64,000 nucleotides of DNA from Paraphysomonas bandaiensis (lineage: Eukaryota > Protista > Chrysophyceae): positions 78,339 to 142,338 of the forward strand of contig CBFFRP010000475.1 in the NCBI GenBank assembly GCA_965644295.1. The letters are read 5' to 3'. Below the pieces are notes generated by a model that was not told the DNA's origin, searched no databases, and saw only the letters and a list, made by a program, of their open reading frames with translations. Both the position numbers and the translations under genes were made by a program. Positions 1-56,770 of the stretch are shown here, piece after piece. How positions within the stretch are numbered: the stretch's first letter is position 1; each line of letters starts with the position of its first letter.

Positions 1-3000
1 GCCTCTGGTCAACATATTCACCAGACGAATAATTGAATTCCTCGAATTCAATTTTCCCTTCATTTAGATTAAAATCGCCAGAATTCGACCCTCTCACGCA
101 GTGTGTTGACATATCGACCTGCTTGTGGCTTTCTTGGATTTCTCTCCAACTTCCAACATGTTGTAGCTTTTCCAACCACTCCGACATGATCCGGTCATCA
201 AAATCTGAGCCATCTACCGCACCAGGCCATCGCAACCCATTCTGCAGCATGCATATCGAATCAGGATCATATTCATCACTATCCTCCCACGACACATGTC
301 CATCATGCCCTGTTCCAATATCAGATGGAGCTGAAGAACACTCACTCGAATGTGCATGCGCACAACCGTCACCTACAACCGTGCACTCATCTTCACAAGT
401 TGAAAGTGACGAACATCTCCGTATCCATTTAGTAACCTCGTTCGACGGAGGAAGGGACTCTTTCTGTACCCTACTGATACTACACTTCGCCTGCTCCTTA
501 TCGAAATTGTTCACAGTTTCAGCAGGATGCACACGACGGGATGATACCGTCGGCCGGCCAACTGAAATACTCTCGCTGGATGGAAGCGAGCCTGCAAAAT
601 CTAATCGAGTTGATCCTCTTCCAGAGATCGTCAAAAAATGAAGTATGATCACAACAGTCACACATGGAACAAAGGCTAGCACTGGATTCAGCCTGAAAAG
701 TTGTACGTGTAAGACAACTATATAACCCAACCCAAATGTACTAACAATCTCCAGGGCCATGTCTTGAATCGGTTCAGGCAGCTCAATCATACTCGTAACC
801 GCAAATAACAGCACTCTACTAAAGGCTTGGGTCAAAAACTGAAATTTCGTATCATAATTACGCTCCATCGATCGGGCCTTGGTCTTCACTGATTTCTTCG
901 GCCACGGTGTAGAATATTGCATAATTAGTCTACTCTCTGGAAGATTCGGATACAATGACGCCAATCTAACGGAGGGGTAAAGATACCTAGCAGCGTTGAA
1001 TTCGTCATCAGAAGGACTCAAAAGAGAAGTACAATTTTTCGAATTTTGTTTGAATGAAACTATATCATGAGTCACTTTCTTTTTAATCTTCATGACATCT
1101 TTCATTGTCATAAAGGGAATGGCAATATGTTGAATAATTACCATACCGGTGCATACAAGTGTTATATTAAATATAAGCCACACAACAAAACTGTAAAACC
1201 AAGCCTTCTGTCGAGTTTCTGTTTGTCTCATTGCAAACAAGTATATATACAGTAACATCGCAGCCGCCACCACAGTCAAAAAAATCCATGTGCAAACTTT
1301 CGCAAATAATGTGGCCCTTCTCTTGGGGGCACTATCACGGCGATCTTTAGCATCCAATATCTGACCATTAGCACTGTCCATAAGATCCTTGATAAAGAGG
1401 TAAACTAACCTCTTGTTCTTATTTTCTCTATTTATACTTGGATTGCCAAAATATACATATTCGCGCTGTACAATCTTACGAACATTACTCAACTCGGAGA
1501 GGATCATTGCTTGTCCAGAGTTTTCGGAATGACCAGTAAAACAAAAGAATAATTTCGTCAGCTTCAAAATCATGCTATTTTTGACATCAGCAGTCAGTTC
1601 TTCGCCCCAAACACCTACAAACATAAGCACAATCAACAAAATATACACCACGCCAAGAAAAAAACTTACAATCAAACTCCTCCCGCTCAGAATCCGTTAG
1701 TATACTTCGAAATCGTCTGATATCGTTCAAAAGACGGGCAAAATCCTCATGAAGAGTAGAGTCACATACATCACCAGAAATTTCAACCTTAGGAACAGTG
1801 CTATTATATGATGTCGAACTCTCAATATGTGCTGAGTCACGACTGTCTCCACGTTCCAGTGAGCTAACTCTTGACAATTGTCTTCTCCGCTTTGATATGC
1901 CCTCCTGTCTTGTCTCGGCCGACAAAATGAACATAATTAGACTTTGCAATGATATCGCTATCGGTGTACTAATGACTGCTGCAAATAGTGCTACCATGAG
2001 GACACGCTCGAAGTCGCTACTTATCGGTCGAATGTAGCAACTGTCTTCCGCAGCATCCCAATAACACTTACTCTCACTTCTAGACAAAGATGACTTCTCT
2101 TTCAAGCACTCTTCACTGTTAGTGTAGGCTTCACATGAACCATCATCAGGATCAGCGATGTCATATGTGATGGCCTCAATGAAGAGCATCGTGAGAATGT
2201 TCATTAGGAGAGACATGATACGGATAGGACGTGAATATGTCGGAGAATAATGACATACCACTCCGATCCAGCGGTGATATATCTGCACTTCATTCGACAC
2301 TTTCTTCCAGAGTGGAACTCGTCTCAATACCATCGGAAGTGCATCTTCAATCATCTGAACATCTTTACTACTACCAGAATTTTGAACTCTCACTTGCGCC
2401 AACTTTGCCCTACCAACTTGCGGCTGTACAGTTGCATTGCTGACAGACCGAAACACACGTGCCATTATCGCATCCGTTAAGGAATTTGATTTGGTTATTA
2501 GCTGTCGACCACTTCTACTGCTACTGGGAGTAACTCTATTACTTCGTGATAAAAGCGATGACATCTTGTGAATGTTTTCTCTTTCTATGCTCTTCATAGA
2601 ATCCTTTTCAGTGGCTTTATCATGATAGTCCAAGTGACAGGCACCTATAACAGAAAATATTCCGAAAAGACCTATGAACCCAACCGTGAGTAGAACACGA
2701 ATACTTCCCACAACATCATGGCCACTCAAATCATCTACACTTGTCCATGTATCCACAAACTCAATCAATATAGAACGACTCACTGAAGCAAAGTCAACAG
2801 ACACCGCACTGTCGTCAGATGACTCTGATTCCTGCATTCGTCGTCGCTGCCTCTCCAAAGGAAGCGTACATTCACATGTTATATTGGAGCCAGTATATTC
2901 TATCAAAGAGCATGATACACTGTCGTCTCCAATAGCATCACACGTAACTGAGAAATCATGAACAGGGCATGAACGGGATACAGTTCCTGATGAAGACCCG

Positions 3001-6000
3001 TTACATGATAGAGTGATAATATCTCCTGCCGGACATTCGTACTCTTGCGATATTAGTTCTCCCTTCTCACAATCCAAATAGAGAGTATCGATATCACTGC
3101 CATCAGACAAATGACTCTCGGGGATGCTCTTCACATTTTGCAAAACAACAGTCACGTTACACGCATCAAACGAAGACGTATTGCAGGGGGACTCATCAAA
3201 GCGAAGACCAAAAGGAACACTTAAAGTATATGTATCATTACTGAAGTGAGACACCAAGGATTCAACAACAGCAACTTTAAACGCAGTTTGATACGCACTC
3301 TGAGGTACCACTGCAGTCTGAGAGCTCGAGCCTACCAAATCTTCAAGAATCGTTCGAGGTGAGGTAACAGTCGAATTGCGCCGGCCATCTAATGACAAAC
3401 ATGAAAAGCGAAACAAATTATTCACTACATCAATTGAGTTCTGTCCTTCAACCATATCCAGCAAAATGAAGTCGTAATAGGCTTGATATAATACAAAGGA
3501 TGTTCCCCCGACTGATGGGTCGGCATCAAGAACTAAGTCTAGAACAGTGCTCACTGCAGTGATGTCTTCATAAGACAAGCCAAGGTCAACTGCATCTGCA
3601 ATGAACTCCACTGCCATAGATGCTACCAAATCTTTCGTTTTATCCTCAATACCACTTGGATCGCTGCATATTGAGGCCAAACCTTCTATCCAAGAGACAA
3701 GAGTATCTGCTGACGGATCTTCCAGAAGCGACACACTACGAATCGCTTCCGCAAGCTGATGTCGTGTTTGTAAAGTCTGATTAAATTCATCTACGCTGTA
3801 CTCACACGAATGACCAGTGAAGCCATCGTAACAAGCACAGATGGCTTTACAGTGAACACTCAACACATTGCAAGTGGTGTACGTGACATTGGCGTCGTAT
3901 ACAGACACATATTGGCAATACCCAGAATACGAACAATCTCCTGGACAGTCCTTAGGCATGACAACACATACATTGGAATCGCACACTTCCCACTGCGTAG
4001 AGTCACAGTCACTGTTTCGGGTGCACAATGTCGGATTTGACGATCCCATTGAAAGGCGTCTTCTCGTATCATCGCTCAAGTGTAAACAGTACGTATTCGC
4101 ATGACCACTTTCTCCAGCGTACCCTTCCAAACACTCTCCACATGTACTCGCAGTTGTCGTGCAGTCAAATCTATTCAGATTAGTACAGTTAGGCGCGGAA
4201 GAGCAATTCACACTGTTTAAAATTGAGGCTGTGGTTGCAATAGCTTTTTTCATCTCATCAGCATAGCCATTGGAGTTTGCAAGGGCATCTGTGAGATAGT
4301 TTTGTTTGTCCTCTGCAGAAAGTTCCTGCATCTTTACCTCCACAGAGCTATAGGAAGCAATCTTGGCATCAAGAATGTCAAAAACTTGCAATCTCGTGCT
4401 AAGCATGAAATCCGCAGAATCCTTCCCCGCAGGCAAATCCGTAGACACATAAGAGAGCTCCAACCGAGACCGGTGAACAAGATATGCTCCAGATGAGCCT
4501 TGATATGCGAATTCATAAGATAACGGAATATCAGAATCTTCCCACTTTGAAGCTGAAAATGTGAATTCCGTGACAAGCATGGTCCCTGTAGATGGTGAAA
4601 CAGAGTAGCTACCCGGATATGGAGGAGAATTGGTCGATATCGTAATGGCAGCAGTCGCAGAGTACCCCGTGTCTAGGCTGCATGCAAGTTGGAAGCTAAA
4701 CTTCGACTCCTGGGGTAAAGTATTCGGTGGTAACACCAGACTCAATGTATACACTTCCCGAGAAGACGCGGGAGTTGCTATCGCTTTCGTCACTTCGGAC
4801 AGTGAAACCGATTGCAGATGTATTGATGGGTCGTCAACAGACCAAGTTGCTGTACCACCAGCGGCAACTTCCACGGTGGCAAGTAGTTTGAACTTCTGAG
4901 AGGGGTTGATTCGAGTCCCGCTTGATGATGAAAGTGTCACCAATGGGGCCAGTGATGGAAGTACAGTGATTATAACTGTTGCAGTGGAAGATCGAAAATC
5001 TTTCGTGTGAACAACTTTCACTGTCAGCTGGTGCACGCTATCAATCATCTCATCGCTGGAATTCTGAGGTACAGATACTGAAACCTGTGATGGTGAAATA
5101 GCTGATATAACCAGGTCGCTGTTGGCTTTGTATGACGGATAGGTTTGTGCACAGCTGAAGGCAAACGACAATCCAGCACCGACACCTGTGGCTTCGTTAT
5201 TATCTTCATCGTAGCTACCAGACGCATCCACATTTACTGAGCTATCCGTTCGAACCCCCCTACTAGATGATCCAGACACCTTCGCAACGACCAACCCTTT
5301 GACTACTGTCACAGAAACCGAGGCAGAGGAATACTTCAACGACTCCGTGTGTTGTGCTGTCAGGGTTACAGTATACACAGTCCCCACTTCCAGAGTGTAA
5401 GGCAACAACTTGAACGTCCGCGGGTCGCTCGATTGAGAAACTAAGCTGAGAGGGGTCCCTTGTGCAAATATTTTCCAAGAATATTGTATATTCGCAGTGC
5501 TGGTCGCCCCACCACATATGGAGGTGTACGCTTGACCAGTGACTGATAGCGACGAATATCTGTACTGCAACCTCAGCTTCTTAGAATTCAAAGATACTAC
5601 AGGAACATTTTCAGATGAAGAAACAACAAAAGAGTGCGTTGACCTCCCACAACCACCGATAAAATTGCACATAACTACTGTAATACTGTATGCGAATCCT
5701 GGATACAGTAAGGCCTGTGGCACTGTTAAGACGCCTGATGCTTCGTAATTGGCGTTTAAATAGGTAGTGACCAAGGAAACATTCTCGTGAATTCCATAAA
5801 CATTAAACGATATATTCACAAAGGAGCGCCCTCCAGAACCTTTGGATCCAGAAATATCTAGGGGTAGTGAGTCACATGGCCCGATCTGAGAAGGCGATAT
5901 AATCGATAATGTGGGAACAAGAGGCGTTTGCGGAGCATGTATTCTGATAGAGGTCAATGAATTAAACTGCCACGTACTACACGCAGGACCGTTATTTAGC

Positions 6001-9000
6001 ACTTTACATTTAGCTCGAATCTTATTCGCTTGCAGTGTAATTACATCAGACACACCAACAACTCCACTCGCCCCAGGATATATCGACACTCTTGAATCAT
6101 CAACCCATAAGCATCTCGTGTCCTTCTGAATTCCCGGAAACGAAAACACATCAATGCAGTTGAAATTATTGGTATATCCTGCACGATTGGTGGGTGCATC
6201 AAACAGCAGTGTTATCTTAGTTCCATCATTAGAAAACGTCGCTGATCTCAATACTGGAACCGCAGGTTCCGCATCAACAGCAAGCACAGTGATAAAACTT
6301 GCAGGAGTATAGGAAATGACATAATCATTTGCTGATAATCCCGACATTGTAAATGCCAAGTCATACACACCAGCGTTCTGGCGAATATACGCCACATACT
6401 CAACAGTAGATGAAGTGAAAACCACAGACGATGGGACAAACGGATATACTGTTGAGTTTTGAAAGGCAGCCAACGATACATTCAAGTCATTGGGTACTAC
6501 ATCACCAGCATCGAGCTTCAATGCAACTGCCGTGTCTTCTACACTCGAGTACGAAGTCGCAATCAATTCAACATTGAAGGTTCGGCAGCATGCCGTCCTT
6601 GCCGCTGATTTGGTCCCACGCATTAGATCATAATCCATTGGTGTATCTAGTGCAGAGTATGTAGCACAGTATACATCATAATCTGAAGACGCAATTAAAC
6701 CCTCGATGATAAATGATACAGTCGTGGAAGTTATCGATATCAAATCATTGCGAAGAAGAAGAGTATCAACAGTAGACGGAACAAATGAATCCGATGCTAA
6801 GTACGCTGAGCAAACGAGAGATCCTTCCGGTACATCGACAGCCACTGTGGCTGTAATCGAGTTAGTTGTGCTGGATACAGTTACGCTCAATATATCAGAT
6901 GCCACTGATAACTCGGTAAATTCTATGTGCAATATGTTTAATATTGTAGGAAACAGGGGGGTTTCAACCTCATTACATGGACTATCGTATATGATCGCAG
7001 ATGGTTTAACAGTTGATGGTGTGCACGGAGAGGCGGTACAGTTCGCACACATGAATGCAGAAGTCAGGCTCCCACAACGGCCCACCATCCAACTCGTATC
7101 ATGACACTTGAAAGATATGGATGAAGACACGGTTGCCTTGGACACTGACATAAGTGTAGTCACAATATCAGCAGCAGTTGCACTATCGTTACAAGTCACA
7201 GTCACTGATTCCAGGTCAGCTGAATAGTCTACTGTCGATATCATACTGAGAGTAGAAGCTGTATAGGTAATCAACGCTGTCGCAATATCGTCATTGACGA
7301 AAACTTCCCACTCGCCACATGTGCCATACCCGCGTTCACCTTTGACTACTAAGCTCGCAAATGTACTTCTCGCTCCCAGATCAATGCCATTGATATATGC
7401 ATCATATTTCTCTTTCCACAGAGTCATGAATGATATCGACGGAGATAGAGAAGGTACAAGTGTAGGACTCATGGAGAGTGTTGGTGGTAAAGTTGGATAG
7501 TGAGTAACTGTAGGAACTGGCGCGCATGTTGGTCGGTATGTTGGAAATGATGTCGGTACCTTAGTAGGAATATTAGTTGGTGAAGATGTAGGAAGTCTTG
7601 TAGGTGATGTTGTTGGTTTCGATGATGGCACTGAGGTGGGGACAACGCTTGGACTCTCTGTAGGACCAGAGGTAGGAATTGAAGTTGTAGGTGTAACAGT
7701 TGGAAATGACGTCGGAATCAACGAAGGACAGCACGTTGGATATCCACTGGGCATTGCAGTCGGTGTCGTGGTAGGAGATGACGATGGTATCATGGTGGGA
7801 AAATCAGTGGAAAATGACATTGGCGGCATAGTGGGAAAACAAGTTGGATGAGGCGTTGGATAAAACATTGGATGAACAGTGGGATAAGAAGTTGGATTAT
7901 GAGTTGGAAATGATGTAGGTGGCATAGTGGGATAACAGGTGGGATAAAAACTTGGATGAACAGTGGGATAAGAAGTTGGGTAATCAGTTGGGAATGATGT
8001 TGGATGTAAAGTAGGATAAGACGTTGGGTAATCGGTTGGGAACGATGTCGGTGGCATAGTGGGATAACAGGTTGGGAATGACGTTGGATAGAAACTTGGG
8101 TGAACAGTGGGATAAGACGTTGGGTAATCAGTTGGGAATGACGTTGGATGAACAGTGGGAGAAGAAGAGGGGTAATCGGTTGGGAACGATGTCGGTGGCA
8201 TAGTGGGATAACAGGTTGGGAATGACGTTGGATAAACAGTGGGAGAAAAAGTTGGGTAATCCGTTGGGAATGATGTTGGATGTAAAGTAGGATAAGACGT
8301 TGGGTAATCGGTTGGGAACGATGTCGGTGGCATAGTGGGATAACAGGTTGGGAATGACGTTGGATAAACAGTGGGATAAGACGTTGGGTAATCCGTTGGG
8401 AATGATGTTGGATGTAAAGTAGGATAAGACGTTGGGTAATCAGTTGGGAATGACGTCAGTGGCACAGTGGGATAGCAGGTTGGGAATGACGTTGGATAAA
8501 CAGTGGGATAAGAGGTTGGATAATCAGTTGGGAACGATGTCGGTGGCATAGTGGGATAACAGGTTGGGAATGACGTTGGATAAACAGTGGGATAAGAAGT
8601 TGGGTAGTCGGTTGGGATTGATGTCGGTGACATAGTAGGATAAGACGTTGGGTAATCAGTTGGGAACGATGTCGGTGGCATAGTGGGATAGCAGGTTGGG
8701 AATGACGTTGGATAAACAGTGGGATAAGAAGTTGGGTAATCAGTTGGGAATGACGTTGGATGAACAGTGGGATAAGAAGTTGGGTAATCAGTTGGGAATG
8801 ATGTTGGATGTAAAGTAGGATAAGATGTTGGGTAATCAGTTGGGAACGATGTCGGTGGCATAGTGGGATAACAGGTTGGGAATGACGTTGGATGAACAGT
8901 GGGATAAGAAGTTGGGTAATCAGTTGGGAATGACGTCGGTGGCATAGTGGGATAACAGGTTGGGAATGACGTTGGATAAACAGTGGGATAAGAAGTTGGG

Positions 9001-10469
9001 TAATCAGTTGGGAATGACGTTGGATGTAAAGTAGGATAAGACGTTGGATAATCAGTTGGGAATGACGTCGGTGGCACAGTGGGATAGCAGGTTGGGAATG
9101 ACGTTGGATAAACAGTGGGATAAGACGTTGGATAATCAGTTGGGAACGATGTCGGTGGCATAGTGGGATAACGGGTTGGGAATGACGTTGGATAAACAGT
9201 GGGATAAGACGTTGGATAATCAGTTGGGAACGATGTCGGTGGCACAGTGGGATAACAGGTTGGATAAGACGTTGGATAAACAGTGGGATAAGAAGTTGGG
9301 TAATCGGTTGGGAACGATGTCGGTGGCATAGTGGGATAAGACGTTGGATAGAAACTTGGGTGAACAGTGGGATAAGAAGTTGGATAGTCGGTTTGGATTG
9401 ATGTCGGTGACATAGTAGGATAAGACGTTGGGAAATCAGTTGGGAACGATGTCGGTGGCACAGTGGGATAACAGGTTGGATAAGACGTTGGATGTAAAGT
9501 AGGATAAGATGTTGGGTAATCGGTTGGGAAGGATGTCGGTGGCACAGTGGGATAACAGGTTGGGAATGACGTTGGATAAACAGTGGGATAAGAAGTTGGG
9601 TAATCAGTTGGGAATGACGTTGGATGAAAAGTAGGATAAGAAGTTGGGTAATCAGTTGGGAATGACGTTGGATGAAAAGTAGGATAAGACGTTGGATAAT
9701 CAGTTGGGAACGATGTCGGTGCCACAGTGGGATAGCAGGTTGGATAAAACGTTGGAAAATGAGTTGGGATTGAAGTTAGTTGCGTAGTAGGGGATAGAGA
9801 TGGCCTCACAGTCAGAATCTCAGTGGGGAAAGAAGTTGGTGGCGTAATAGGATAAGAAGTTGGAAATTCAGAGGGGAATGAAGTTGGAAAATCAGTGGGG
9901 AATGACGTCGGCGACGAAGTAGGAGATGTAGATTGTATTGTAGTCGGAATCTTAGTAGGGGATAAAGTTGGTGGCGTAGAAGGATAATAAGTTGGATGAA
10001 CAGTAGAAACAACAGTAGGATAAGAAGTTGGAAACTCAGAGGGGAATGAAGTTGGAAAATCAGTGGGGAATGACGTCAGCGACGAAGTAGGAGATGTAGA
10101 TGGTATTGTAGTCGGAATCTTAGTAGGGGATAAAGTCGGCGACATAGTGGGATAACAAGTTGGATTAACTGTAGGAACAACTGTATGTTCAGAAGTTGGT
10201 GACATAGTGGGATAACAAGTTGGATTAACTGTAGGAACAACTGTATGTTCAGAAGTTGGAAATTCAGTGGGGGATGAAGTTAATGGCGTAGTAGGATACT
10301 TAGATGGCATCCTAGTCGGGCTGTCAGTGGAAGCTAGTGCATTCTTCGTAGTATGAATTAAAGGCGTTAGTGTTGAATGTAATTTAGATGAAGGTGTTGT
10401 ACAGCCATATTGTTCAGTATATGACAGCATCCATATGAATATGAGTGTATTGCAGTGATGGGTCCTCAT
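1..10469 (-). CDS. Gene A: giant polycystin-1/PKDREJ-like membrane protein, headless form (leader, PTxx stalk, REJ core, multi-TM); 3' end runs off the window start
   Basis: ATG at 10469 (MRTHHCNTLIFIWMLSYT; the ORF track starts at an upstream GTG). Exon 10469-1670, GT-AG intron 1669-1615 (55 nt, EFD-C-VWGEE), exon 1614 to <1. Collinear with gene B at offset 13723, so the stop should lie ~150 nt left of the window (~3520 aa). REJ-type motif NSPPYPGSYSVSPSTG..TEFTF..WEDSDIPLSYEF; EGF-like CPGDCSYSGYC..CACYDGFTGHSC; PKD1-like HRW..YSRPIR..EAITY. Confidence 0.85.
7620..10300 (-). repeat. Coding minisatellite stalk of gene A (12-nt/4-aa PTxx units: PTSF, PTDY, PTSY, PTCY, PTMP)
   Basis: Directly visible tandem repeats such as gttgggaatgac/gttgggtaatca; ~900 aa Pro/Thr-rich with frequent Tyr, Phe and Cys. 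Confidence 0.95.
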
Positions 10470-10574
10470 AACCCTCTCACACTTCACACTTCACACTTCA
10501 CTTCACTTCTATCTAACCACACATCACACACTCCATATCCATATGAATATACAGTATGCACATATTCAGGTACT
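10417..10574 (-). promoter_or_regulatory. Leader cassette shared with gene C (upstream region, start codon, first 18 codons)
   Basis: Reverse complement matches 37928-38090 almost exactly (one substitution, one fewer GAAGT unit); flanks on both sides are unrelated. Confidence 0.85.
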
Positions 10575-11559: not shown

Positions 11560-12979
11560 TGCACCCCGCTCCATGGCTCTGTTGTGGTCGTGTTTGCATC
11601 ACAATTGCTGGTCTTGCCTGAATTTGACGCGCCTCACCCGGTCTCAGTCGATATTTGCACTCCACCCCCACTCAAATGAAAACCTCTTTAGCTCATGTTG
11701 TCCACGCTACACTACCCCTTTACCAGCCTTCAGTTGCCCCATTGCCCACACTCTTAAAGTTACATCACGCGCATGCACTTCTGCAGTGACGCAAACTCTC
11801 TTACCCTATCACTCTGGTAGATACCATATCTCACCTCCCCATTATCTATCGCTACATACTCTCCTGCTCCCTCATTGGAGGCAGATATGTACTATCCAAG
11901 ACCCCGGACTCCAATCACTACCCCCTGTTCCCTACTAAACCCCACAAGTCCTATAAATGCTCCAGTTAATAGCATCCACACGAGCCCTATATCAATGGAC
12001 TTATCCCTGCATATCAGCTCAAACACTCCACCTCACAGGCCCAAAACTATCAACTGCGCTCTCTGTCCAACATTCATATAACCCCACTGCACTGTCCCAC
12101 ACACGCACCTGCTCCTTACATTCCACCTCCTCGAAACCTCCAACCAAACTATCTCCTCTCCTTTCGTCTCTGATCCCTTGCCATCACCTCTCTTCTGCAC
12201 ACACCCTATGCCTCAGCCTGTACCCCCCTGCACTAACACAGACACTAAGGGCAGCTGAGGATGTGTGAGTCTCTCCTACAGACCATCATGCTCAGCTCGT
12301 GCATAGATCTATCATAGTACTCGACCATGGTGACCCTTGTGCTATTGCGAAGTACTACATTCCTCAATCTCATGTTGTCTCTCTTGTACCATCACACTTC
12401 CTATCGACTCCCTGTTGCTGGATACACCGGAGAACCCTCGTATCCCACTGGTGTCCAACTACACACTCTCTTCCATGTGTTCTTTGCTACCGGCTAAGAC
12501 AGCAAAAGAGCCGATTCCGACGCTACTTCACGGTAGATCAACACCTTTTGCAAGACCTTCAGCCACTTGGCACAATGCCTAAGGGAAGGCCACCAGATCG
12601 CCAAACTCAGAAGGGTTTATTGCTGCTTCCCCTGGTTGCCGTGAGGCACATAAGGCAGTCCCAGATGCAAGCTGCACAAAATGTATGTGTAGTCTTAAGC
12701 GTTTCAATGTGGTAGTAGTTGACTTAGATCACTGCTTTCACTTGTCATTCTGTACGTTGTACAACGTCCCTAATACACATCTATCATATAGCGATAATGG
12801 TCGCATCTTGGTGCTTGCGGCGACGCACAAGCAGTTCTCGTAGCGTTAAATAGTAGGATACAAGAGTTAGCACTAGTTAGTAAATGGTAGATGCTTATCT
12901 AGCTCGACCAGTTTGTCCATCTAGCTACTAAGCTGGTGCAGATTTATAACGCCTATTGCTAAAAGTAAGACTTTCAATA
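11560..12979 (+). mobile_element. 5'-truncated non-LTR retroelement copy 1 (degenerate)
   Basis: About 12110-12979 is homologous to the reverse complement of 28801-29752 and ends in the family tail ...gcctattgct...aagactttcaata. Upstream C-rich part has a peptide (QMKTSLAHVVHATLPLYQ) loosely resembling copy 4. 5' boundary approximate; no TSD found. Confidence 0.6.
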
Positions 12980-44000: not shown

Positions 44001-47000
44001 TCATGATTCTCCATCGTCATCCACCCATTCAATGATTCCATCATGTAATCCATCGTCATCTACACCTTCAATAGTTCATTGTTCTCCATCATCATCTACC
44101 CCTTCAATTGTTCATGGTTATCCCTCATCACCTACCCCTTCAATAGTTCATGGTTATCCCTCATCATCTACACCTTCAATAGTTCATTGTTCTCCATCAT
44201 CATCTACACCTTCAATAGTTCATGGTTCTACCTCATCATCTACCTCTTCAATGATTCCACCATGTTTTCCATCGTCATCTACACCTTCAATAGTTCACGG
44301 TTCTCCCTCATCATCTACCCCTTCAATAGTTCATGGTTCTACCTCATCATCTACCCCTTCAATTGTTCATGATTTTCCATCGTCATCCACCCCTTCAATG
44401 ATTCCACCATGTTTTCCATCGTCATCTACACCTTCAATAGTTCATGGTTATCCCTCATCATCTACACCTTCAATAGTTCATGGTTCTACCTCATCATCTA
44501 CACCTTCAATAGTTCATGGTTCTACCTCATCATCTACCCCTTCAATGATTCCACCATGTTCTCCATCATCATCTACACCTTCAATAGTTCATGGTTCTCC
44601 CTCATCATCTACCCCTTCAATAGTTCATGGTTCTACCTCATCATCTACCCCTTCAATTGTTCATGATTCTCCATCGTCATCCACCCCTTCAATGATTCCA
44701 CCATGTTTTCCATCGTCATCTACCCCTTCAATAGTTCACGGTTCTCCCTCATCATCTACCCCTTCAATAGTTCATGGTTCTACCTCATCATCTACCCCTT
44801 CAATTGTTCATGATTCTCCATCGTCATCCACCCATTCAATGATTCCACCATGTTTTCCATCGTCATCTACACCTTCTATAGTTCATGGTTCTCCATCATC
44901 ATCTACCCCTTCAATAGTTCATGGTTCTACCTCATCATCTACCCCTTCAATTGTTCATGATTCTACATCGTCATCCACCCATTCAATGATTCCATCATGT
45001 AATCCATCGTCATCTACACCTTCAATAGTTCATTGTTCTCCATCATCATCTACCCCTTCAATTGTTCATGGTTCTACCTCATCATCTACCCCTTCAATTG
45101 TTCATGATTCTCCATCGTCATCCACCCCTTCAATGATTCCACCATGTTTTCCATCGTCATCTACACCTTCAATAGTTCACGGTTCTACCTCATCATCTAC
45201 ACCTTCAATAGTTCATGGTTCTACCTCATCATCTACCCCTTCAAAGATTTCCTCATGTTTTCCATCGTCATCTACACCTTCAATAGTTCACGGTTCTCCC
45301 TCATCATCTACCCCTTCAATAGTTCATGGTTCTACCTCATCATCATCTACCCCTTCAATTGTTCATGATTCTACCTCATCATCTACCCCTTCAATTGTTC
45401 ATGATTCTCCATCGTCATCCACCCATTCAATGATTCCATCATGTAATCCATCATCTACACCTTCTATAGTTCATGGTTCTCCATCATCATCTACCCCTTC
45501 AATAGTTCATGGTTCTACCTCATCATCTACCCCTTCAATTGTTCATGATTCTCCATCGTCATCCACCCATTCAATGATTCCACCATGTTTTCCATCGTCA
45601 TCTACACCTTCAATAGTTCACGGTTCTACCTCATCATCTACACCTTCAATTGTTCATGGTTCTACCTCATCATCTACCCCTTCAATTGTTCATGATTCTC
45701 CATCGTCATCCACCCCTTCAATGATTCCACCATGTTTTCCATCGTCATCTACACCTTCAATAGTTCATGGTTCTACCTCATCATCTACACCTTCAATAGT
45801 TCATGGTTCTACCTCATCATCTACCCCTTCAAAGATTTCCTCATGTTTTCCATCGTCATCTACACCTTCAATAGTTCACGGTTCTCCCTCATCATCTACC
45901 CCTTCAATAGTTCATGGTTCTACCTCATCATCATCTACCCCTTCAATTGTTCATGATTCTACCTCATCATCTACCCCTTCAATTGTTCATGATTCTCCAT
46001 CGTCATCCACCCATTCAATGATTCCATCATGTAATCCATCATCTACACCTTCTATAGTTCATTGTTCTCCATCATCATCTACCCCTTCAATAGTTCATGG
46101 TTCTACCTCATCATCTACCCCTTCAATTGTTCATGATTCTCCATCGTCATCCACCCATTCAATGATTCCATCATGTAATCCATCATCTACACCTTCTATA
46201 GTTCATTGTTCTCCATCATCATCTACCCCTTCAATAGTTCATGGTTCTACCTCATCATCTACCCCTTCAATTGTTCATGATTCTCCATCGTCATCTACAC
46301 CTTCAATAGTTCATGTTTCTCCATCATCGTCCAATCCTTCAAAGATTTCCTCATGTTCTCCATCATCATCTACACCTTCAATAGTTCATGGTTCTCCATC
46401 ATCATCTACCCAATCAATGATTCCATCATGTAATCCATCATCGTCCAACACTTCAAAGATTTCCTCATATTCTCCATCATCATCTACCCCTTCAATAGTT
46501 CATGGTTCTACCTCATCATCTACCCCTTCAATAGTTCATGGTTATCCCTCATCACCTACCCCTTCAATAGTTCATGGTTATCCCTCATCATCTACACCTT
46601 CAATAGTTCATTGTTCTCCATCATCATCTACACCTTCAATAGTTCATGTTTCTCCATCAGCGTCCAATCCTTCAAAGATTTCCTCATGTTCTCCATCATC
46701 ATCTACACCTTCAATAGTTCATGGTTCTCCATCATCATCTACTCAATCAACGATTCCATTATGTAATCCATCATCGTCCAACCCTTCAAAGATTTCCTCA
46801 TGTTCTCCATCATCATCTACACCTTCAATAGTTCATGGTTATCCCTCATCACCTACCCCTTCAATAGTTCATGGTTATCCCTCATCATCTACACCTTCAA
46901 TAGTTCATTGTTCTCCATCATCATCTACACCTTCAATAGTTCATGTTTCTCCATCATCGTCCAATCCTTCAAAGATTTCCTCATGTTCTCCATCATCATC

Positions 47001-50000
47001 TACACCTTCAATAGTTCATGGTTCTCCATCATCATCTACCCAATCAATGTTTCCATCATGTAATCCATCATCGTCCAACCCTTCAAAGATTTCCTCATAT
47101 TCTCCATCATCATCTACCCCTTCAATAGTTCATGTTTCTCCATCATCTACCCCTTCAATAGTTCATGTTTCTCCATCATCTACCCCTTCAATAGTTCATG
47201 GTTCTACCTCATCATCTACCCCTTCAATAGTTCATGGTTCTCCATCATCATCTGCCCAATCAATGATTCCATCATGTAATCCATCATCGTCCAACCCTTC
47301 AAAGATTTCCTCATGTTCTCCATCATCATCTACACCTTCAATAGTTCATGGTTATCCCTCATCATCTACCCCTTCAATAGTTCATGGTTATCCCTCATGT
47401 AATTCATCATCATCCAACCCTTCTATAGTTCCATCATCATCTATCCCTTCAATGGATCCATCATGTTTTCCGTCATCATCTACCCCTTCAATGATTCCAT
47501 CATGTAATCCATCATCATCCAACCCTTCAATGGGTCCATCATGTTCCCCGTCATCATCTACACCTTCTATAGTTCCATCATGTTCTCCGTCATCGTCTAT
47601 CCCTTCAATGATTCCAACATGCAATCCATCATCATCTTCCCCTTCTATGCTACCATCATCATCTACCCCTTCAATGATTCCATCATGTAATCCATCATCA
47701 TCCAACCCTTCTATTGTTCCATCATCATCTATCCCTTCAATGGATCCATCATGTTTTCCGTCAGCATCTATCCCTTCAATGGGTCCATCATGTTCCCCGT
47801 CATCATCTACACCTTCAATGATTCCATTATGTTCTCCGTCATCGTCTATCCCTTCAATGATTCCATCATGCAATCCATCATCATCTACCCCTTCAATGAT
47901 TCCATCATGTAATCCATCATCATCCAACCCTTCAATGGATCCATCATGTAATTCGTCATCATCTACACCTTCTATAGTTCCATCATGTTCTCCGTCATCG
48001 TCTATCCCTTCAATGATTCCAACATGCAATCCATCATCATCTACCCCGTCAATGATTCCATCATGTAATCCATCATCATCCAACCCTTCTATAGTTCCAT
48101 CATCATCTATCCCTTCAATGGATCCAACATACAATCCGTCATCATCTACACCTTCAATGATTCCATCATGTAGTCCGTCATCATCTACCCCTTCAATGAT
48201 TCCATCATGTAATCCATCATCATCCAACCCTTCTATTGTTCCATCATCATCTATCCCTTCAATGAATCCATCATGTTTTCCATCATCATCTACATCTTCT
48301 ATAGTTCCATCATGTTCTCCGTCATCGTCTATCCCTTCAATGATTCCAACATGCAATCCATCATCATCCAACCCTTCTATAGTTCCATCATCATCTACAC
48401 CTTCAATGATTCCATCATGTTTTCCGTCAACGTCTACCCCTTCAATGATTCCATCATGTAATCCATCATCATCCAACCCTTCTATAGTTCCATCATCATC
48501 TACACCTTCAATGATTCCATCGTGTTTTCCGTCAACGTCTACCCCTTTAATGATTCCATCATGTTTTCCGTCATCATCTTCCCCTTCAACGAGTCCACCA
48601 TGTAATCCGTCATCATCTATCCCTTCAATGGGTCCATCATGTAATCCGTCATCATCTACACCTTCTATAGTTCCATCATGTTCTCCGTCATCGTCTATCC
48701 CTTCAATGATTCCATCATGTTTTCCGTCATCATCTACCCCTTCAATGATTCCATCATGTAATCCATCATCATCTATCCCTTCAATAATTCCAACATTCAA
48801 TCCATCATCGTTTTCCCCTTCAACGATTCCATCATTCAATTCATCATCATCATCCAACCCTTCAATGGTTCCATCATCATCTATCCCTTCAATGGATCCA
48901 TCATGTTTTCCGTCAACATCTATCCCTTCGATGATTCCATCATGTAGTCCATCATCATCTATCCCTTCAATGGATCCATCATGTAATCCATCTTCATTCA
49001 TCCCTTCAATGGTTCCATCATGTAATCCGTTATCATCTACACCTTCAATGATTCCATCACCAACAACATCACCTACAAGACTTCCTACATCTTCACCAAC
49101 TAATATTCCTACTAAGGTACCGACATCATCACCAACTTACCGACCAACATGCGCGCCAGTTCCTACAGTTACGCACTATCCAACTTTGCCACCAACACTC
49201 TCCATGAGGCCTACATGTGTACCTTCTGTATCTCCGTCGATATCATTCATGACGCTGTGGAAAGAGAAATATGATGCATATATCAATGGCATTGATCTGG
49301 GAGCGAGAAGTACATTTGCGAGCTTAGTAGTCAAAGGTGAACGCGGGTATGGCACATGTGGCGAGTGGGAAGTCTTCGTCAATGACGATATTGCGACAGC
49401 GTTGATTACCTATACAGCTTCTACTCTCAGTATGATATCGACAGTAGACTATTCAGCTGACCTGGAATCAGTGACTGTGACTTGTAACGATAGTGCAACT
49501 GCTGCTGATATTGTGACTACACTTATGTCAGTGTCCAAGGCAACCGTGTCTTCATCCATATCTTTCAAGTGTCATGATACGAGTTGGATGGTGGGCCGTT
49601 GTGGGAGCCTGACTTCTACATTCCTGTGTGCGAACTGTACCGCCTCTCCGTGCACGCCATCAACTGTTAAACCATCTGCGATCATATACGATAGTCCATG
49701 TAATGAGGTTGAAACCCCCCTGTTTCCTACGATATTAAACATATTGCACATAGAATTTACCGAGTTATCAGTGGCATCTGATATATTGAGCGTAACTGTA
49801 TCCAGCACAACTCACTCGATTACGGCCACAGTGGCTGTCGATGTACCGGAAGGATCTCTCGTTTGCTCAGCGTACTTAGCATCGGATTCATTTGTTCCGT
49901 CTACTGTTGATACTCTTCTTCTTCGCAATGATTTGATATCGATAACTTCCACGACTGTGTCGTTTATCATCGGGGGTTTAATTGCGTCTTCAGATTATGA

Positions 50001-53000
50001 TGTATACTGTGCTACGTACTCTGCACTAGATACACCAATGGATTATGATCTAATGCGTGAGACCAAATCAGCGGCAAGGACGGCATGCTGCCGAACCTTA
50101 AATGTTGAATTGATTGCGACTTCGTACTCGAGTGTAGAAGACACGGCAGTTGCATTGAAGCTCGATGCTGGTGATGTAGTGCCCAATGACTTGAATGTAT
50201 CGTTGGCTGCCTTTCAAAACTCAACAGTATATCCGTTTGTCCCATCGTCTGTGGTTTTCACTTCATCTACTGTTGAGTATGTGGCGTATATTCGCCAGAA
50301 CGCTGGTGTGTATGACTTGGCATTTACAATGTCGGGATTATCGGCAAGTGATTATGTCATTTCCTATACTCCTGCAAGTTTTATCACTGTGCTTGCTGTT
50401 GATGCGGAACCTGCGGTTCCAGTATTGATGTCAGCGACGTTTTCTAATGATGGAACTAAGATAATACTGCTCTTTGATGCACCCACCAATCGTGCAGGAT
50501 ATACCAATAATTTCAACTGCATTGATGTGTTTTCTTTTCCGGGTATTCAGAAGGACACAAGATGTCTATGGGTTGATGATTCAAGAGTGTCGATATATCC
50601 TGGGGCGAGTGGAGTTGTTGGTGTGTCTGATGTAATTACATTGCAAGCGAATAAGATTCGAGCTAAATGTAAAGTGCTAAATAACAGTCCTGCGTGTAGT
50701 ACGTGGCAGTTTAGTTCGTTGACCTCTATCAGAATACATGCTCCGCAAACGCCTCTTGTTCCCATATTATCGATTATATCGCCTTCTCAGATCGGGCCAT
50801 GTGACTCACTACCCCTAGATATTTCTGGATCCAAGGGTTCTGGAGGGCGCTCCTTTGTGAATGTATCGTTTAATGTTTATGGAATTCACGAGAATGTTTC
50901 CTTGGTCACTACCTATTTAAACGCCAATTACGAAGCATCAGGCGTCTTAACAGTGCCACAGGCCTTACTGTATCCAGGATTCGCATACAGTATTACAGTA
51001 GTTATGTGCAATTTTATCGGTGGCTGTGGGAGGTCAACGCACTCTTTTGTTGTTTCTTCATCTGAAAATGTTCCTGTAGTATCTTTGAATTCTAAGAAGC
51101 TGAGGTTGCAGTACAGATATTCGTCGCTATCAGTCACTGGTCAAGCGTACACCTCCGTATGTGGTGGGGCGACCAGCACTGCGAATATGCAATATTCTTG
51201 GAAAATATTTGCACAAGGGACCCCTCTCAGCTTAGTTTCTCAATCGAGCGACCCGCGGACGTTCAAGTTGTTGCCTTACACTCTGGAAGTGGGGACTGTG
51301 TATACTGTAACCCTGACAGCACAACACACGGAGTCGTTGAAGTATTCCTCTGCCTCGGTTTCTGTGACAGTGGTCAAAGGGTTGGTCGTTGCGAAGGTGT
51401 CTGGATCATCTAGTAGGGGTGTTCGAACGGATAGCTCAGTAAATGTGGATGCGTCTGGTAGCTACGATGAAGATAATAACGAAGCCACAGGTGTCGGTGC
51501 TGGATTGTCGTTTGCCTTCAGCTGTGCACAAACCTATCCATCATACAAAGCCAACAGCGACCTGGTTATATCAGCTATTTCACCATCACAGGTGTCAGTA
51601 TCTGTACCTCAGAATTCCAGCGATGAGATGATTGATAGCGTGCACCAGCTGACAGTGAAAGTTGTTCACACGAAAGATTTTCGATCTTCCACTGCAACAG
51701 TTATAATCACTGTACTTCCATCGCTGGCCCCATTGGTGACACTTTCATCTTCAAGCGGGACTCGAATCAACCCCTCTCAGAAGTTCAAACTACTTGCCAC
51801 CGTGGAAGTTGCCGCTGGTGGTACAGCAACTTGGTCTGTTGACGACCCATCAATACATCTGCAATCGGTTTCACTGTCCGAAGTGACGAAAGCGATAGCA
51901 ACTCCCGCGTCTTCTCGGGAAGTGTATACATTGAGTCTGGTGTTACCACCGAATACTTTACCCCAGGAGTCGACGTTTAGCTTCCAACTTGCATGCAGCC
52001 TAGACACGGGGTACTCTGCAACTGCTGCCATTACGATATCGACCAATTCTCCTCCATATCCGGGTAGCTACTCTGTTTCACCATCTACAGGGACCATGCT
52101 TGTCACGGAATTCACATTTTCGGCTTCAAAGTGGGAAGATTCTGATATTCCGTTATCTTACGAATTCGCATATCAAGGCTCATCTGGAGCATATCTTGTT
52201 CACCGGTCTCGGTTGGAGCTCTCTTATGTGTCTACAGATTTGCCTGCGGGGAAGGATTCTGCGGATTTCATGCTTAGCACGAGATTGCAAGTTTTTGACA
52301 TTCTTGATGCCAAGATTGCTTCCTATAGCTCTGTGGAGGTAAAGATGCAGGAACTTTCTGCAGAGGACAAACAAAACTATCTCACAGATGCCCTTGCAAA
52401 CTCCAATGGCTATGCTGATGAGATGAAAAAAGCTATTGCAACCACAGCCTCAATTTTAAACAGTGTGAATTGCTCTTCCGCGCCTAACTGTACTAATCTG
52501 AATCGATTTGACTGCACGACAACTGCGAGTACATGTGGAGAGTGTTTGGAAGGGTACGCTGGAGAAAGTGGTCATGCGAATACGTACTGTTTACACTTGA
52601 GCGATGATACGAGAAGACGCCTTTCAGTGGGATCGTCAAATCCGACATCGTGCACCCGAAACAGTGACTGTGACTCGACGCAGTGGGAAGTGTGCGATTC
52701 CAATGTATGTGTTGTCATGCCTAAGGACTGTCCAGGAGATTGTTCGTATTCTGGGTATTGCCAATATGTGTCTGTATACGACGTTAATGTCACGTACACC
52801 ACTTGCAATGTGCTGAGTGTTCACTGTAAAGCCATCTGTGCTTGTTACGATGGCTTCACTGGTCATTCGTGTGAGTACAGCGTAGATGAATTTAATCAGA
52901 CTTTACAAACACGACATCAGCTTGCGGAAGCGATTCGTAGTGTGTCGCTTCTGGAAGATCCGTCAGCAGATACTCTTGTCTCTTGGATAGAAGGTTTGGC

Positions 53001-56000
53001 CTCAATATGCAGCGATCCAAGTGGTATTGAGGATAAAACGAAAGATTTGGTAGCATCTATGGCAGTGGAGTTCGTTGCAGATGCCATTGACCTTGGCTTG
53101 TCTTATGAAGACATCACTGCAGTGAGCACTGTTCTAGACTTAGTTCTTGATGCCGACCCATCAGTCAGGGGAACATCCTTTGTATTATATCAAGCCTATT
53201 ACGACTTCATTTTGCTGGATATGGTTGAAGGACAGAACTCAATTGATGTAGTGAATAATTTGTTTCGCTTTACATGTTTGTCTCTAGATGGACGGCGCAA
53301 TTCGACTGTTACCTCACCTCGAACGATTCTTGAAGATTTGGTAGGCTCGAGCTCTCAGACTGCAGTGGTACCTCAGAGTGCGTATCAAACTGCGTTTAAA
53401 GTTGCTGTTGTTGAATCCTTGGTGTCTCACTTCAGTAATGATACATATGCTTTAAGTGTTCCTTTTGGTCTTCGCTTTGATGAGTCCCCCTGCAATACGT
53501 CTTCGTTTGATGCGTGTAACGTGACTGTTGTTTTGCAAAATGTGAAGAGCATCCCCGAGAACCATGTGTCTGATGGCAGTGATATCGATACTCTCTATTT
53601 AGATTGTGAGAAAGGAGAACTGATATCGCAAGAGTACGAATGTCCGGCAGGAGATATTATCACTCTATCATGTAACGGGTCTTCATCAGGAACTGTATCC
53701 CGTTCATGCCCTGTTCATGATTTCTCAGTTACGTGTGATGCTATTGAAGACGATAGTGTATCATGCTCTTTGATAGAATATACTGGCTCCAATATAACAT
53801 GTGAATGCGCGATTCCTTTGGAGAGGCAGCGACGACTAATGCAGGAATCAGAGTCATCTGACGGCAGTGCGGTGTCTGTTGACTTTGCTTCAGTGAGTCG
53901 TTCTATACTGATTGAGTTTGTGGATACATGGACAAGTGCAGATGATTTGAGTGGCCGTGATGTTGTGGGAAGTATTCGCGTTCTACTCACAGTTGGGTTA
54001 ATTGGATTGTCAAGTGTGATATGTATTCTTGTTTCCTATCGTTTTGACTATCACGATGAGAAGTGTGTTGCAGATGTAGATGTGAATTCTAAACACCGGC
54101 CTTTGGAGATTATGCTACCTAATAAAGTTCAAGAAAAACAACGGGTTAGAATTCCACTATCCTCTTTGATAACAGGCAAATTAAAATCTAGATTCCTTGG
54201 TGGTGGTTGGAAATCGCCACGTGTTTCCGTCCGAAAGAGATCTCATCGTATTGTTGATAAGTGTGACGTTAAATCAATAGAAGATGCACTTCCGATGGTA
54301 CTGCAAAGCACACCATTATGGAAAAAAGTGTCGAATGAATTGCGGGTATATCACCGTTGGATCGGAGTGGTATGTCATTATTCACCGACATATTCACGTC
54401 CTACCCGAGTCATGTCTCTTCTAATGAACATTCTCACGATGCTCTTCATTGAGGCCATCACATATGATATCACTGATCCTGATGATGGTTCGTGTGAAAC
54501 CTACACTAGCAGTGAAGAGTGCTTGAAAGAGAAGTCATCTTTGTCTAGAAGTGAGAGTAAGTGTTATTGGGATGCTGCGGAAGACAGTTGCTACATTCGA
54601 CCGATAAGTAACGACTTTGAGCGTGTCCTCATAGTAGCACTATTTGCAGCAGTCATTAGCACGCCGATTGCAATCATATTTCAGTACCTGATTATGTTTA
54701 TTCTCGCAGCCAAAACACGCGATAAATTTTCTATTCGCCAACGATCTTCGTCATGGAGAGTCCAGGATATAGAACGTGGTGTATCCGGTCGTATTTCTCG
54801 TTCATTATCCCTCTCTCGTTCAGAATCGCTTGATCCCGACGGCAATACGTTTCAAACATCTGTCACAACAGGGAGTGAACGTACACTACTTGAGGAGTTT
54901 TCCAATTTGGTAGATGATGTGCGGAAGTATAGGTGTCAATTGGTTACAGGCGAGCGGAATGAATTTGATTGTAAGTAATATTGAAATTATTCACAACGTG
55001 ATTTTATTATTTCGTATGACAGATGTGTGGGGAAATACAATTACTGAAGAGTACACGAAATACCAGCACGTTAACAAAATAATGACGTATTTCAATAGCG
55101 ATGAGTCCTGTCAGCAGCGGGTTCTGGCAGAACTGAATCATGTTCGAAAAGTTGTTCAGTCGGAATGTTCTTATTTCGACAATACTTCGGTTACAGTGGT
55201 TGAAAAGAACAAACGATTGGTTTATCTCTTCATTAAAGACCTCATGGACAGTGTGAATGAAGCCATACTGGATGTTAAAGACCGCCGTGACAATTCTCGT
55301 AAGAGAGAAGCTACCTTTTTTGCAAAATTCCTCACGTGGATATTGATTATTTCCATGGTCATTGGTATGTTGTTTTATATATATCTCTTTGCCATGAGAC
55401 AAACTGAATCTCGTCAAGATGCCTGGTTTAAAAGTTTTGTTGTGTGGTTAGTTTTTGAAATAACACTTGCCAGCACAGCACTTGTTATGGTACAACATGT
55501 TATCGTTCCATTGTTCACTCTTCGGGATGTACGAAGGATAAAGAAGAAAGTTATATACGATATTGCGGCATACAAGAGTGGTATTAAATGTACAACTCCC
55601 TCTCCCGATGAAAAGTTCAATGCAGCGAGATATCTGTATCCTTCTGTGAGATTAGCAACCTGCTATCCACACCTACCTGAAAGTAAGGTAATTGCAAATT
55701 ATTCAACACCTTGGCCCAAGAAGTCCTTTAAGGCTAAGGTGACCGCAGTGCATGAAAGTTACGACCTGAGGTTTAAATTTCTGGGACAAGCAATGAGCAG
55801 AGTTATTCTTTTTTCATTGGTCAGTTTTTTACAGCTTCCTGACCCAGTGCAAGACATTGTCGTTCAAGTTGTCAATACCTTTGGCCTCGGATATATTGTT
55901 GTCATGCACGTACAGTTATATAAAATTAATCCTATACTCGCTTTCATCCCTTGTATCACAGTCATTGTGATTGTCCATTTCATGACTGCTTCAGGAAAGT

Positions 56001-56770
56001 CGGTGACGCGTTTGGACTCCAATCTCACAGCGCCCAGTACTTATCAGGAAAAGATAGTTCAAGACCAAGGTACTAATTTTTCACACAAAGCAGTGCTGCC
56101 TGGCGTACAGTCGGATAATGTTTTCAACGGGCACCACAAAAGTAGGCATGATACCCTACAGAATGGGCTCTATCTCGCCGGCGAAATGGCAAAGCGTATG
56201 CATCGAAATGCTGACAGTACTTCTTTAAGAAAACACTGCAAAGAATCTCTGCGTCGGGATGGTGATATAACTACCAGCCTTGACGCCGATTACTATGGAT
56301 ACAAACCGAAACCTTTATATGTTGATATGATAAGTGACTTCTCACTGTCATCTGCACAATCTGAAAGTGACGCAAGTTCTTCTACGTGCTACAGAAGTGT
56401 AGCATACAATTCCCCTATTATGGTCCAGAGTGATGATAGTGTATGCAGTGGGAGTAGTTTTGAATCATACCGTAGCGATAATGTTGGTGTAGTCGAAGAA
56501 TTGGTATCTGATAGTGAAGAAAATACAGATGACAGTATTTCACTCTCCAGTGAATATAATCTTGAAGACGAGTGTGAATATTGTAGCGAAGTGTCAAGTA
56601 ATGGAGTGTCGCAGTCCAAAGAGAATAACTTTTGCACAAGTTCCTCTGTGAACAGTGTGAAAGAATCTGATATACGGAGTTCTGACTCTGCGTCATCATC
56701 GTTCAGTATAGAAGAGCAATATATTAGAGATGCGAGTGCCATATCGCCAAGTGAAACCTTATTGATGTAA
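38038..56770 (+). CDS. Gene C: giant polycystin-1/PKDREJ-like membrane protein with tandem NHL-repeat propellers and Ser/Pro/His stalk (~6226 aa)
   Basis: Exons 38038-54970 and 55023-56770 (52-nt GT-AG intron at the same position as in A and B, EFD-Y-VWGN). Signal peptide MRTHHCNTLIFIWMLSYTVLG; roughly 12 NHL-type repeats (DGVGTAASFSYP..ALVAD..HRIRK) at ~38330-40310; core 49059-53999 nearly identical to A/B; divergent TM/cytoplasmic part; Ser/acidic tail. Confidence 0.9.
40520..49058 (+). repeat. Coding minisatellite stalk of gene C (33-nt/11-aa unit PSSSTPSIVHG / PSSSTPSMIPSC) with higher-order duplications
   Basis: About 8.5 kb of tandem repeats; identical shadow ORFs recur at offsets of 879 bp (40704/41583), 1983 bp (42096/44079, 42426/44409) and nearly identically at 588 bp (45144/45732). 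Confidence 0.95.

Follow-up and report, generated by a model that had tools for sequence, protein, structure and literature searches.

How do giant receptor genes lying side by side come to share a nearly invariant base and to bear unrelated heads? The question is raised by a 64,000-nucleotide stretch of the Paraphysomonas bandaiensis genome (contig CBFFRP010000475.1, hereafter C475; positions 78,339 to 142,338 of the forward strand, at the contig's end), referred to as the window, in which an initial sequence-only reading recognized three polycystin-1-like paralogs, A, B, and C, and proposed that interchangeable heads and stalks are joined to a constant core. Polycystin-1 (PC1)-type proteins are known mainly from animals, with 5–10 copies per genome, and their ligands and activation are debated. 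Our analysis places A, B, and C, together with a fourth gene, D, in a lineage-specific PC1/REJ family that comprises ~85 giant surface receptors. The best explanation overall, to which we assign a probability of about 75%, is that these lineage-specific receptors have cores homogenized by gene conversion, and heads and stalks that were replaced over evolutionary time.

The shared core and its membrane base

Self-BLAST of the window returned three ungapped matches and thereby bore out the gap-free common core of the three paralogs. Gene A (3–7640) is 98.2% identical to gene B (13726–21363) over 7638 bp, with 135 mismatches and no gap. A 2677–7617 matches gene C in inverted orientation (53999–49059) at 98.2% over 4941 bp, again ungapped and with 90 mismatches, and B 16400–21340 matches the C core at 98.0% without a gap. 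The abrupt switch described 5' of a common Pro/Thr (PT)-rich motif was also found, A, B, and C being unrelated or only repeat-like beyond it, and the heads are those claimed: Pfam gives Kelch in B, NHL in C, and PT repeats only in A. The fourth array member, D, lies directly upstream of the window on the same contig and is headless like A. Cores of the four genes are 98–99% identical without indels; A, B, and D stand in tandem in one orientation and C is inverted. BLAST of the core against the whole 62.5-Mb assembly found this DNA eight times. The four further copies are 91% identical to A at the nucleotide level and comprise E and F on contig C66, G on C366, and H, which is N-terminally truncated, on C305.

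The proposed polycystin-1-like identity held up in domain and fold comparisons. REJ (PF02010) is matched at E 6.1e-43 in A (residues 1662–2084) and 2.6e-43 in B, and the C core is 98% identical to both. A model of B from the end of REJ to the first transmembrane segment (TM1) (window 16369–17958, minus strand; pLDDT, the predicted local distance difference test score, 78) shows a GAIN domain directly before TM1, consisting of a helical subdomain and a beta-sandwich whose final strand precedes TM1. The nine best Foldseek matches of this model are all GAIN domains of adhesion G protein-coupled receptors (GPCRs), the top one being BAI3 (4dlo, E 4.5e-9). The cysteine pattern and pairs of the GPCR proteolysis site (GPS) are kept, but T-L-P stands where the H-L-T/S autoproteolysis triad would be (...TCECTLP, then the loop LERQRRRMQESE). 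An inserted, poorly ordered basic RQRRR loop was observed between the last two strands of GAIN (B 16400–16500; A residues ~2545–2560), and its RR is conserved in the family alignment. The loop could be a furin/kexin-type protease site in place of autoproteolysis.

The membrane module was modeled from the sequence of P0002, a naturally contiguous homolog 41–49% identical to B. The exhaustive aligner VIA-align matched this model to TM1–TM5 of human PC1 (8z6b_A, residues 3063–3610) with a Z score of 15.4 and a root-mean-square deviation of 3.4 over 198 residues; the runner-up structure reached Z 6.9. PC1 being the best structural match, GPCR structures scored Z ~5 or less, and Pfam gave no 7tm_2 match. 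Hydropathy predicts ~7 TM helices versus the eleven of PC1. No PLAT domain was matched in the Pfam search, and the position of the PC1 PLAT/LH2 loop, between TM1 and TM2, is helical in the P0002 model, part of it at low confidence. Neither exon has a PF08016 (PKD_channel) match, and no TRP-like channel half was detected by Pfam. The ectodomain likewise gave no Pfam match to PKD (Ig-like) repeats or C-type lectins, and ~700 residues before REJ are matchless. Neither the core nor the last exon matched a PDB entry by sequence, and a protein atlas yielded weak leads only (scores 0.85 or less). Because REJ, GAIN, and a PC1-type TM1–5 fold are present without PLAT or PKD_channel, the modeled base is a reduced PC1, composed of REJ, GAIN, and TM1–5 plus two or three extra helices. 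About 15 PF08016 (TRPP-like channel) loci are located elsewhere in the genome. One PKD_channel match (C66:166225–166911) lies inside a 7,778-residue open frame, on a contig with an array of leucine-rich repeat (LRR)-REJ genes; it may mark a full-length polycystin-like giant.

Repeated gene conversion among the cores

Sliding-window comparison of the eight copies showed A, B, and D to resemble one another throughout, core to 3' end, and E–H to be uniformly ~91% identical to A over the same stretch. C behaves differently. Its 98% identity to A is confined to a plus-strand tract of A/B/D type (49059–53999) that begins at the stalk boundary and ends inside TM1; nucleotide identity then drops to 45–69% in the anciently divergent native membrane part that follows (54000–54970, the rest of TM1, a loop, and TM2–3). 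From TM1 onward C is 57% identical at the protein level and represents an old lineage. For the pair A–C, synonymous divergence (dS) amounts to 0.044 in the core, ~0.9 in the tail flanks, and 0.28 in an island around TM2–3 (54277–54702), indicating exchanges of different ages.

Phylogenies of the two parts disagree. The core DNA tree separates ABCD from EFGH at 100/100. The last-exon protein tree, for which six metagenomic sequences served as the outgroup, places C outside ABD+EFGH at 99/99, and an ABCD clade is rejected by the approximately unbiased (AU) test (p 0.008). Adjacent segments of C, with a sharp breakpoint inside TM1, therefore have different histories. Among A–D, 32 informative core sites are distributed 15/11/6 over the three possible groupings, where <0.4 would be expected from homoplasy, and these sites are clustered in blocks (permutation p 0.002). 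The conflicting core and tail histories of C and the incompatible, clustered sites demonstrate concerted evolution by conversion: the near-identical cores of the cluster result from repeated gene conversion among neighboring paralogs, the inverted C included. The ectodomain core of C has been overwritten by the A/B/D type, and its membrane and tail part has stayed anciently divergent.

The core is also under purifying selection (dN/dS 0.14–0.26). Its constancy had been taken for that of a fixed base into which heads are plugged. The constancy is instead local concerted evolution, and cores of the wider family diverge normally, with 91% nucleotide identity to E–H and ~50% amino acid identity or less to the rest.

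Heads, stalks, and the wider family

In each gene, one giant exon is separated from a last exon of ~580 residues by a 52–55-nt GT-AG intron close to the 3' end; the intron occupies an identical position in all eight copies (overlap of the two open reading frames, ORF1 and ORF2). The sequence-only gene models had the core and heads right and missed this intron and the fourth member. Gene A is on the minus strand. Its last exon (1–1614), assigned by frame and acceptor reading, translation, and hydropathy, encodes TM4–7 and the cytoplasmic tail, is 98–99% identical to those of B and D, and by its reading frame extends ~76 nt past the window start. A 55-nt phase 1 intron (1615–1669, GTAAGT...TAG) was read directly and is matched in position in B and C. 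The conserved core within the giant exon (1670–7640; ungapped 98.2% to B, REJ E 6e-43, hydropathy) comprises, in order, a PT-rich linker, ~700 residues without a Pfam match, REJ, a Cys-rich EGF-like part, GAIN, and TM1–3. It is followed upstream by a headless stalk (7641–10300) of ~890 residues of PTSF/PTDY-type Pro/Thr repeats, for which Pfam gives PT only, composition agrees, and Tandem Repeats Finder gives 84/132-nt units. The 5' cassette (10417–10574; 96% identical to 37928–38090) includes ~90 nt upstream, the ATG at 10469, and the signal-peptide-like start MRTHHCNTLIFIWMLSYT. A genome-wide search found this ~160-bp cassette, with its ATG and signal-peptide-like start, only in A, C, and D.

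Gene B, also on the minus strand, has its last exon at 13575–15337 (TM4–7, tail, and stop codon, by ORF reading) and its 3' intron at 15338–15392, placed by ungapped collinearity with A at an offset of 13723. The core (15393–21363) contains REJ (E 2.6e-43), the GAIN domain modeled from 16369–17958, and TM1–3. A stalk of ~1,030 residues of PSGQ/PTGE repeats (21364–24430), delimited by tandem repeats with a 12-nt period over 2.7 kb, composition, and stalk comparison, leads to the Kelch beta-propeller head (24565–25395; Pfam Kelch families, E 1e-37). A 53-nt GT..AG 5' intron (25430–25482) separates the head from an upstream exon that begins at 25483. B has a 5' end of its own (25483–26000, minus strand), with no relation to the cassette of A, C, and D. 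This end probably comprises several small exons, has a start resembling a signal peptide (MYSLVLLSRGVLSNAHVCLFILVIMLALC...), and among its introns only the last is RNA-confirmed.

In gene C, on the plus strand, self-BLAST, N-terminal comparison, and the genome search define the 5' cassette (37928–38090), which has its ATG at 38038 and an 18-residue start matching A and D. The head (38092–40528) consists of two blocks of NHL-type beta-propeller repeats (Pfam NHL E 9e-24, TEN_NHL, SGL). The stalk (40529–49058; ~2,840 residues, 2,843 as counted) is 40% Ser by composition, and its tandem repeats amount to ~224 copies of a 36-nt unit encoding PSSSTPSIVHG over 8.5 kb. Downstream of the ectodomain core, assigned to the conversion tract by its ungapped 98% identity, dS, and the DNA tree, and of the native membrane part, a 52-nt intron (54971–55022, GTAAGT..CAG) sits at the position of that in A with unrelated sequence; the last exon (55023–56770; TM4–7 and tail) is 55–56% identical to A, B, and D at the protein level.

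DNA and RNA contigs of independent runs bear on the reality of these joins. Contigs of runs X1, X8, and X12 cross the B core/stalk junction (21363/21364) without any difference, and contigs of X1 and X8 do the same at the B stalk/head junction. A 1,385-nt RNA contig of X8 skips 25430–25482 between GT and AG, and the X1 DNA contig is continuous there; gene B with its Kelch head is therefore transcribed and spliced. Four runs, filed under as many organism labels, carry the B junctions and head without variation; the runs are possibly near-clonal and so a weak comparison of strains.

Stalks and heads have separate histories. B, D, and F have related stalks (~72% nucleotide identity), and D combines an A-type 5' cassette with a B-type stalk. 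The last 280–485 nt of the B stalk are 84–85% identical to the corresponding ends in E and G, by which the stalk/core junction of B looks ancestral to groups I and II. A genome search found no relative or close copy of the A stalk elsewhere. The nearest heads elsewhere in the genome are 41–54% identical in amino acids to those of B and C, so no recent head donor exists. We conclude that the head changes are real domain swaps within one exon and are not recent. Apart from A/B/D and E–H, the genes whose tails come nearest to that of C lie on C363, C288, and C449 and bear NHL heads, and NHL was probably the ancestral head of this subfamily. The A/B/D/E–H ancestor would then have had an LRR head, with Kelch (B) and headlessness (A and D) as derived replacements. 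Replacement would have proceeded by ectopic, frame-preserving recombination inside the single giant exon. That stalks serve as recombination joints, as first suggested, is plausible, and nothing in the data shows a preference for them; identity stops at the stalk because homology goes no farther, and this boundary need not be a hotspot.

The assembly holds 91 PF02010 matches, equivalent to ~85 loci, almost all in uninterrupted frames of 1,450–7,865 residues. Heads in other REJ genes were counted from genome searches with head proteins and families, and the counts are lower bounds. LRR heads are found in E and G and in the frame adjoining that of F, and LRR_8 in at least 13 REJ frames, the array on C66 included. 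NHL heads like that of C occur in at least nine other REJ frames (35–47% amino acid identity) and Kelch heads like that of B in two (44–54%). FG-GAP heads were absent from the REJ frames of this genome, though they are common in metagenomic relatives, which join PT and REJ with FG-GAP/VCBS, NHL, LRR, LamG, CBM4_9, or Gly-rich heads. Two FG-GAP genes lie in tandem on a single metagenome contig, with REJ recorded in the second only; the first is cut by the locus end. The best relatives outside this genome are metagenomic and only 46% identical, and named matches are from Paraphysomonas, Ochromonas, and Chrysophaeum. A search with the last-exon module retrieved 951 cluster representatives of this C-terminal module, 421 of them at E 1e-30 or better, indicating that the family is large and, as far as our searches reach, undescribed. 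The idea of a variable-head, constant-base family thus survives in its modular half, with Kelch, NHL, LRR, or no head here and FG-GAP, LamG, or CBM in relatives. Its other half does not, the base not being fixed.

Several family members have features of their own. Kelch, NHL, and Kelch matches follow one another ahead of REJ in a single gene region at C181:90184–96087, indicating that heads can be combined. Two equal-scoring REJ matches 14 kb apart (C506:8790–9980 and 22863–24053), each in a 6,091-residue frame, reflect a very recent tandem duplicate or an internal duplication. The LRR head of copy F, in a 748-residue frame, overlaps the stalk-plus-core frame by ~90 nt in a different frame (L015 1447–1538, corresponding to C66:275446–275537), which reflects a frameshift or one more intron. 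Core and tail of copy H match those of G at 99% identity; a stop codon sits immediately 5' of the core, and the sequence farther out is unrelated (L020, C305 ~5000–5120). H could be a pseudogene, a haplotig, or a recent duplicate that has been truncated. Most of the 951 last-exon relatives are proteins of 400–900 residues starting with this module, which suggests that gene callers routinely split the last exon off such genes in genome and metagenome annotations.

Three other explanations of the cluster were weighed against conversion and old replacement. It could be an assembly artefact in which repeats were mis-joined and the head-core pairs are unreal, since stalks of 2.7–8.5 kb of tandem repeats and cores of 5–7.6 kb at 98% identity are both hard to assemble. 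The copies on one contig, however, have scattered, copy-specific substitutions, distinct flanks, and intact frames of 2,967–5,653 residues, the like architecture is present in unrelated metagenome contigs, and both junctions of B are unchanged in DNA and RNA contigs from independent runs. An artefact is therefore extremely improbable. Little more credence is due to plain tandem duplication followed by fast N-terminal divergence with no exchange between copies. The tandem, same-orientation A, B, and D, similar from core to 3' end, are what it predicts, but it leaves unexplained the C core dS of 0.04 beside a tail dS of 0.9, the breakpoint in TM1, and the three incompatible site groupings, and unrelated folds such as Kelch and NHL, or no head at all, are replacements rather than divergence.

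A livelier scenario is that heads and stalks are often re-paired with the constant base through in-frame PT repeats, generating new specificities between strains or clones much as variant surface-protein repertoires do. Consistent with this, the genes are mosaic, with the 5' cassette confined to A, C, and D; stalk types cross heads and core groups, as the ~72% identity among B, D, and F illustrates; periods of 12 or 36 nt keep the reading frame; conversion is ongoing in the cluster; and chimaeric yeast FLO genes formed by ectopic recombination offer a precedent (PMC3512402). Against it stand the 41–54% identity of the closest heads in the genome to those of B and C, the A stalk without a relative, B junctions and head identical across runs with four organism labels, and the clearest event of all, in C, which replaced the core and not the head. 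Active diversification is accordingly unlikely, and nothing shows the ongoing diversification first envisaged. Its fuller form, a recognition repertoire in which selection favors two opposing processes at once, PT-repeat recombination that re-pairs heads and stalks and conversion that keeps REJ-GAIN uniform from the stalk boundary exactly to TM1, is similarly doubtful. If it were true, REJ-GAIN uniformity would be needed to fit a shared partner or activation mechanism, and the family would represent, in a protist, the equivalent of immune or mating receptors that pair variable heads with a constant base.

Several points weigh against conversion-homogenized cores with anciently replaced heads, or against parts of that explanation. 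At the protein level the core tree leaves C unplaced, a position outside the other seven not being rejected (AU p 0.087), and because this tree does not resolve C, the case for conversion of its core rests on DNA and branch lengths. Which way conversion ran, and in what order heads changed, we infer without a rooted test. No read or contig extends across an entire stalk, and head-to-core linkage is therefore supported by the assembly together with junction k-mers; headless A and D could be decaying copies kept healthy-looking by conversion. The PC1 fold match was obtained on the homolog P0002, with a model pLDDT of 65; Foldseek with this model gave no match, PC1 being found only by the exhaustive aligner. 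Heads were catalogued for a minority of the ~85 genes, and a receptor function and a channel partner, which these proteins may have, are predicted only.

Between the genes, inverted intergenic repeats of 78–84% identity (12126–12983 versus 28048–29736) lie between A and B and between B and C, with a 190-bp direct repeat at 28048/28797; they are probably transposon remnants flanking the genes. Two ORFs at 33546–35924 (472 and 304 residues) have no Pfam match at E 0.01, and the window region 61865–62989 also gave ORF sequence with no Pfam match.

Proposed function and comparison with known systems

The predicted protein would begin with a signal peptide, an optional Kelch, NHL, or LRR head, and a 900–2,800-residue Pro/Ser/Thr stalk, and continue with ~700 residues of no assigned fold, REJ, a Cys-rich part, GAIN, ~7 TM helices of which the first five would adopt the PC1 fold, and an acidic cytoplasmic tail. 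Such a receptor may hold its binding head well away from the membrane and use the GAIN-TM base for signaling, possibly with one of the ~15 TRPP-like channel loci supplying a partner, in the sensing of particles, prey, mates, or surfaces. Recognition of prey, mates, or viruses, as first suggested, would be a putative role of the same kind. A unicellular marine eukaryote with ~85 copies, in which ligand-binding heads sit on a minimal REJ-GAIN-TM1–5 base without PLAT or the channel half, offers a natural dissection of the PC1 sensing and signaling core and a candidate molecular basis for the recognition of particles, prey, or partners by heterotrophic and mixotrophic flagellates. The cluster itself is a clean case of ectodomain-limited gene conversion between direct and inverted paralogs. 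Our literature search found no account of an expanded, propeller- or LRR-headed, PLAT-less REJ family in protists, and a recent chrysophyte genomics preprint makes no mention of REJ or polycystin.

The PKD1/REJ family is known and, as far as our searches reach, its expanded, head-bearing, PLAT-less protist branch is new. REJ defines that family, which includes PKDREJ and whose sea urchin members SpREJ1–10 have 1–11 TM segments (PMC1934368). The window genes resemble it in REJ, in a GAIN domain directly before TM1, in the PC1-like TM1–5 fold, in the variable binding modules at the N terminus of a very large ectodomain, and in a family-wide variation of TM number. They differ in lacking PLAT in the first loop, PKD repeats, C-type lectins, and the TRP-like channel half, in having T-L-P and a basic loop in place of the GPS H-L-T/S, in carrying Kelch, NHL, or LRR heads on 900–2,800-residue PT stalks, and in copy number, with ~85 in a 62.5-Mb genome versus 5 in human and 10 in sea urchin. 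A stramenopile parallel is Ectocarpus Esi0130_0068, a male-gamete REJ-GPS protein with 6–7 TM helices that is under positive selection (PMC4700764). Compared by description, it shares with the window genes REJ, GPS, 6–7 predicted TM helices, and a candidate role as a recognition receptor; it is only 1,427 residues long, without a stalk or propeller head, and neither a large family nor concerted evolution is reported for it.

Adhesion GPCRs also combine diverse adhesive N-terminal domains, often a mucin-like stalk, GAIN, and a multi-pass base, and it is to their structures that the GAIN fold is matched here. The membrane part of the window genes, in contrast, is PC1-like and not a secretin-type 7TM, and the autoproteolysis motif is absent. 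In yeast FLO/ALS adhesins, chimaeras arise by ectopic recombination between paralogs (PMC3512402), and recombination in the repeats has been demonstrated experimentally. These too are surface paralogs in which a binding head sits on a Ser/Thr-rich repeat stalk, and exchange has made their genes mosaic. The proteins are, however, unrelated to those of the window, are wall-anchored, and have no signaling base; their exchange takes place in repeats, whereas the exchange found here affects non-repetitive core sequence. Receptor and R-gene clusters of plants are tandem arrays with LRR-type heads in which gene conversion and domain swaps occur, and they share with the cluster described here concerted evolution and mosaicism in tandem receptor genes. 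Their signaling part is a kinase or NB-ARC domain in place of REJ-GAIN-TM, and in them the recognition part is usually shuffled, whereas here it is the non-recognition core that has been homogenized.

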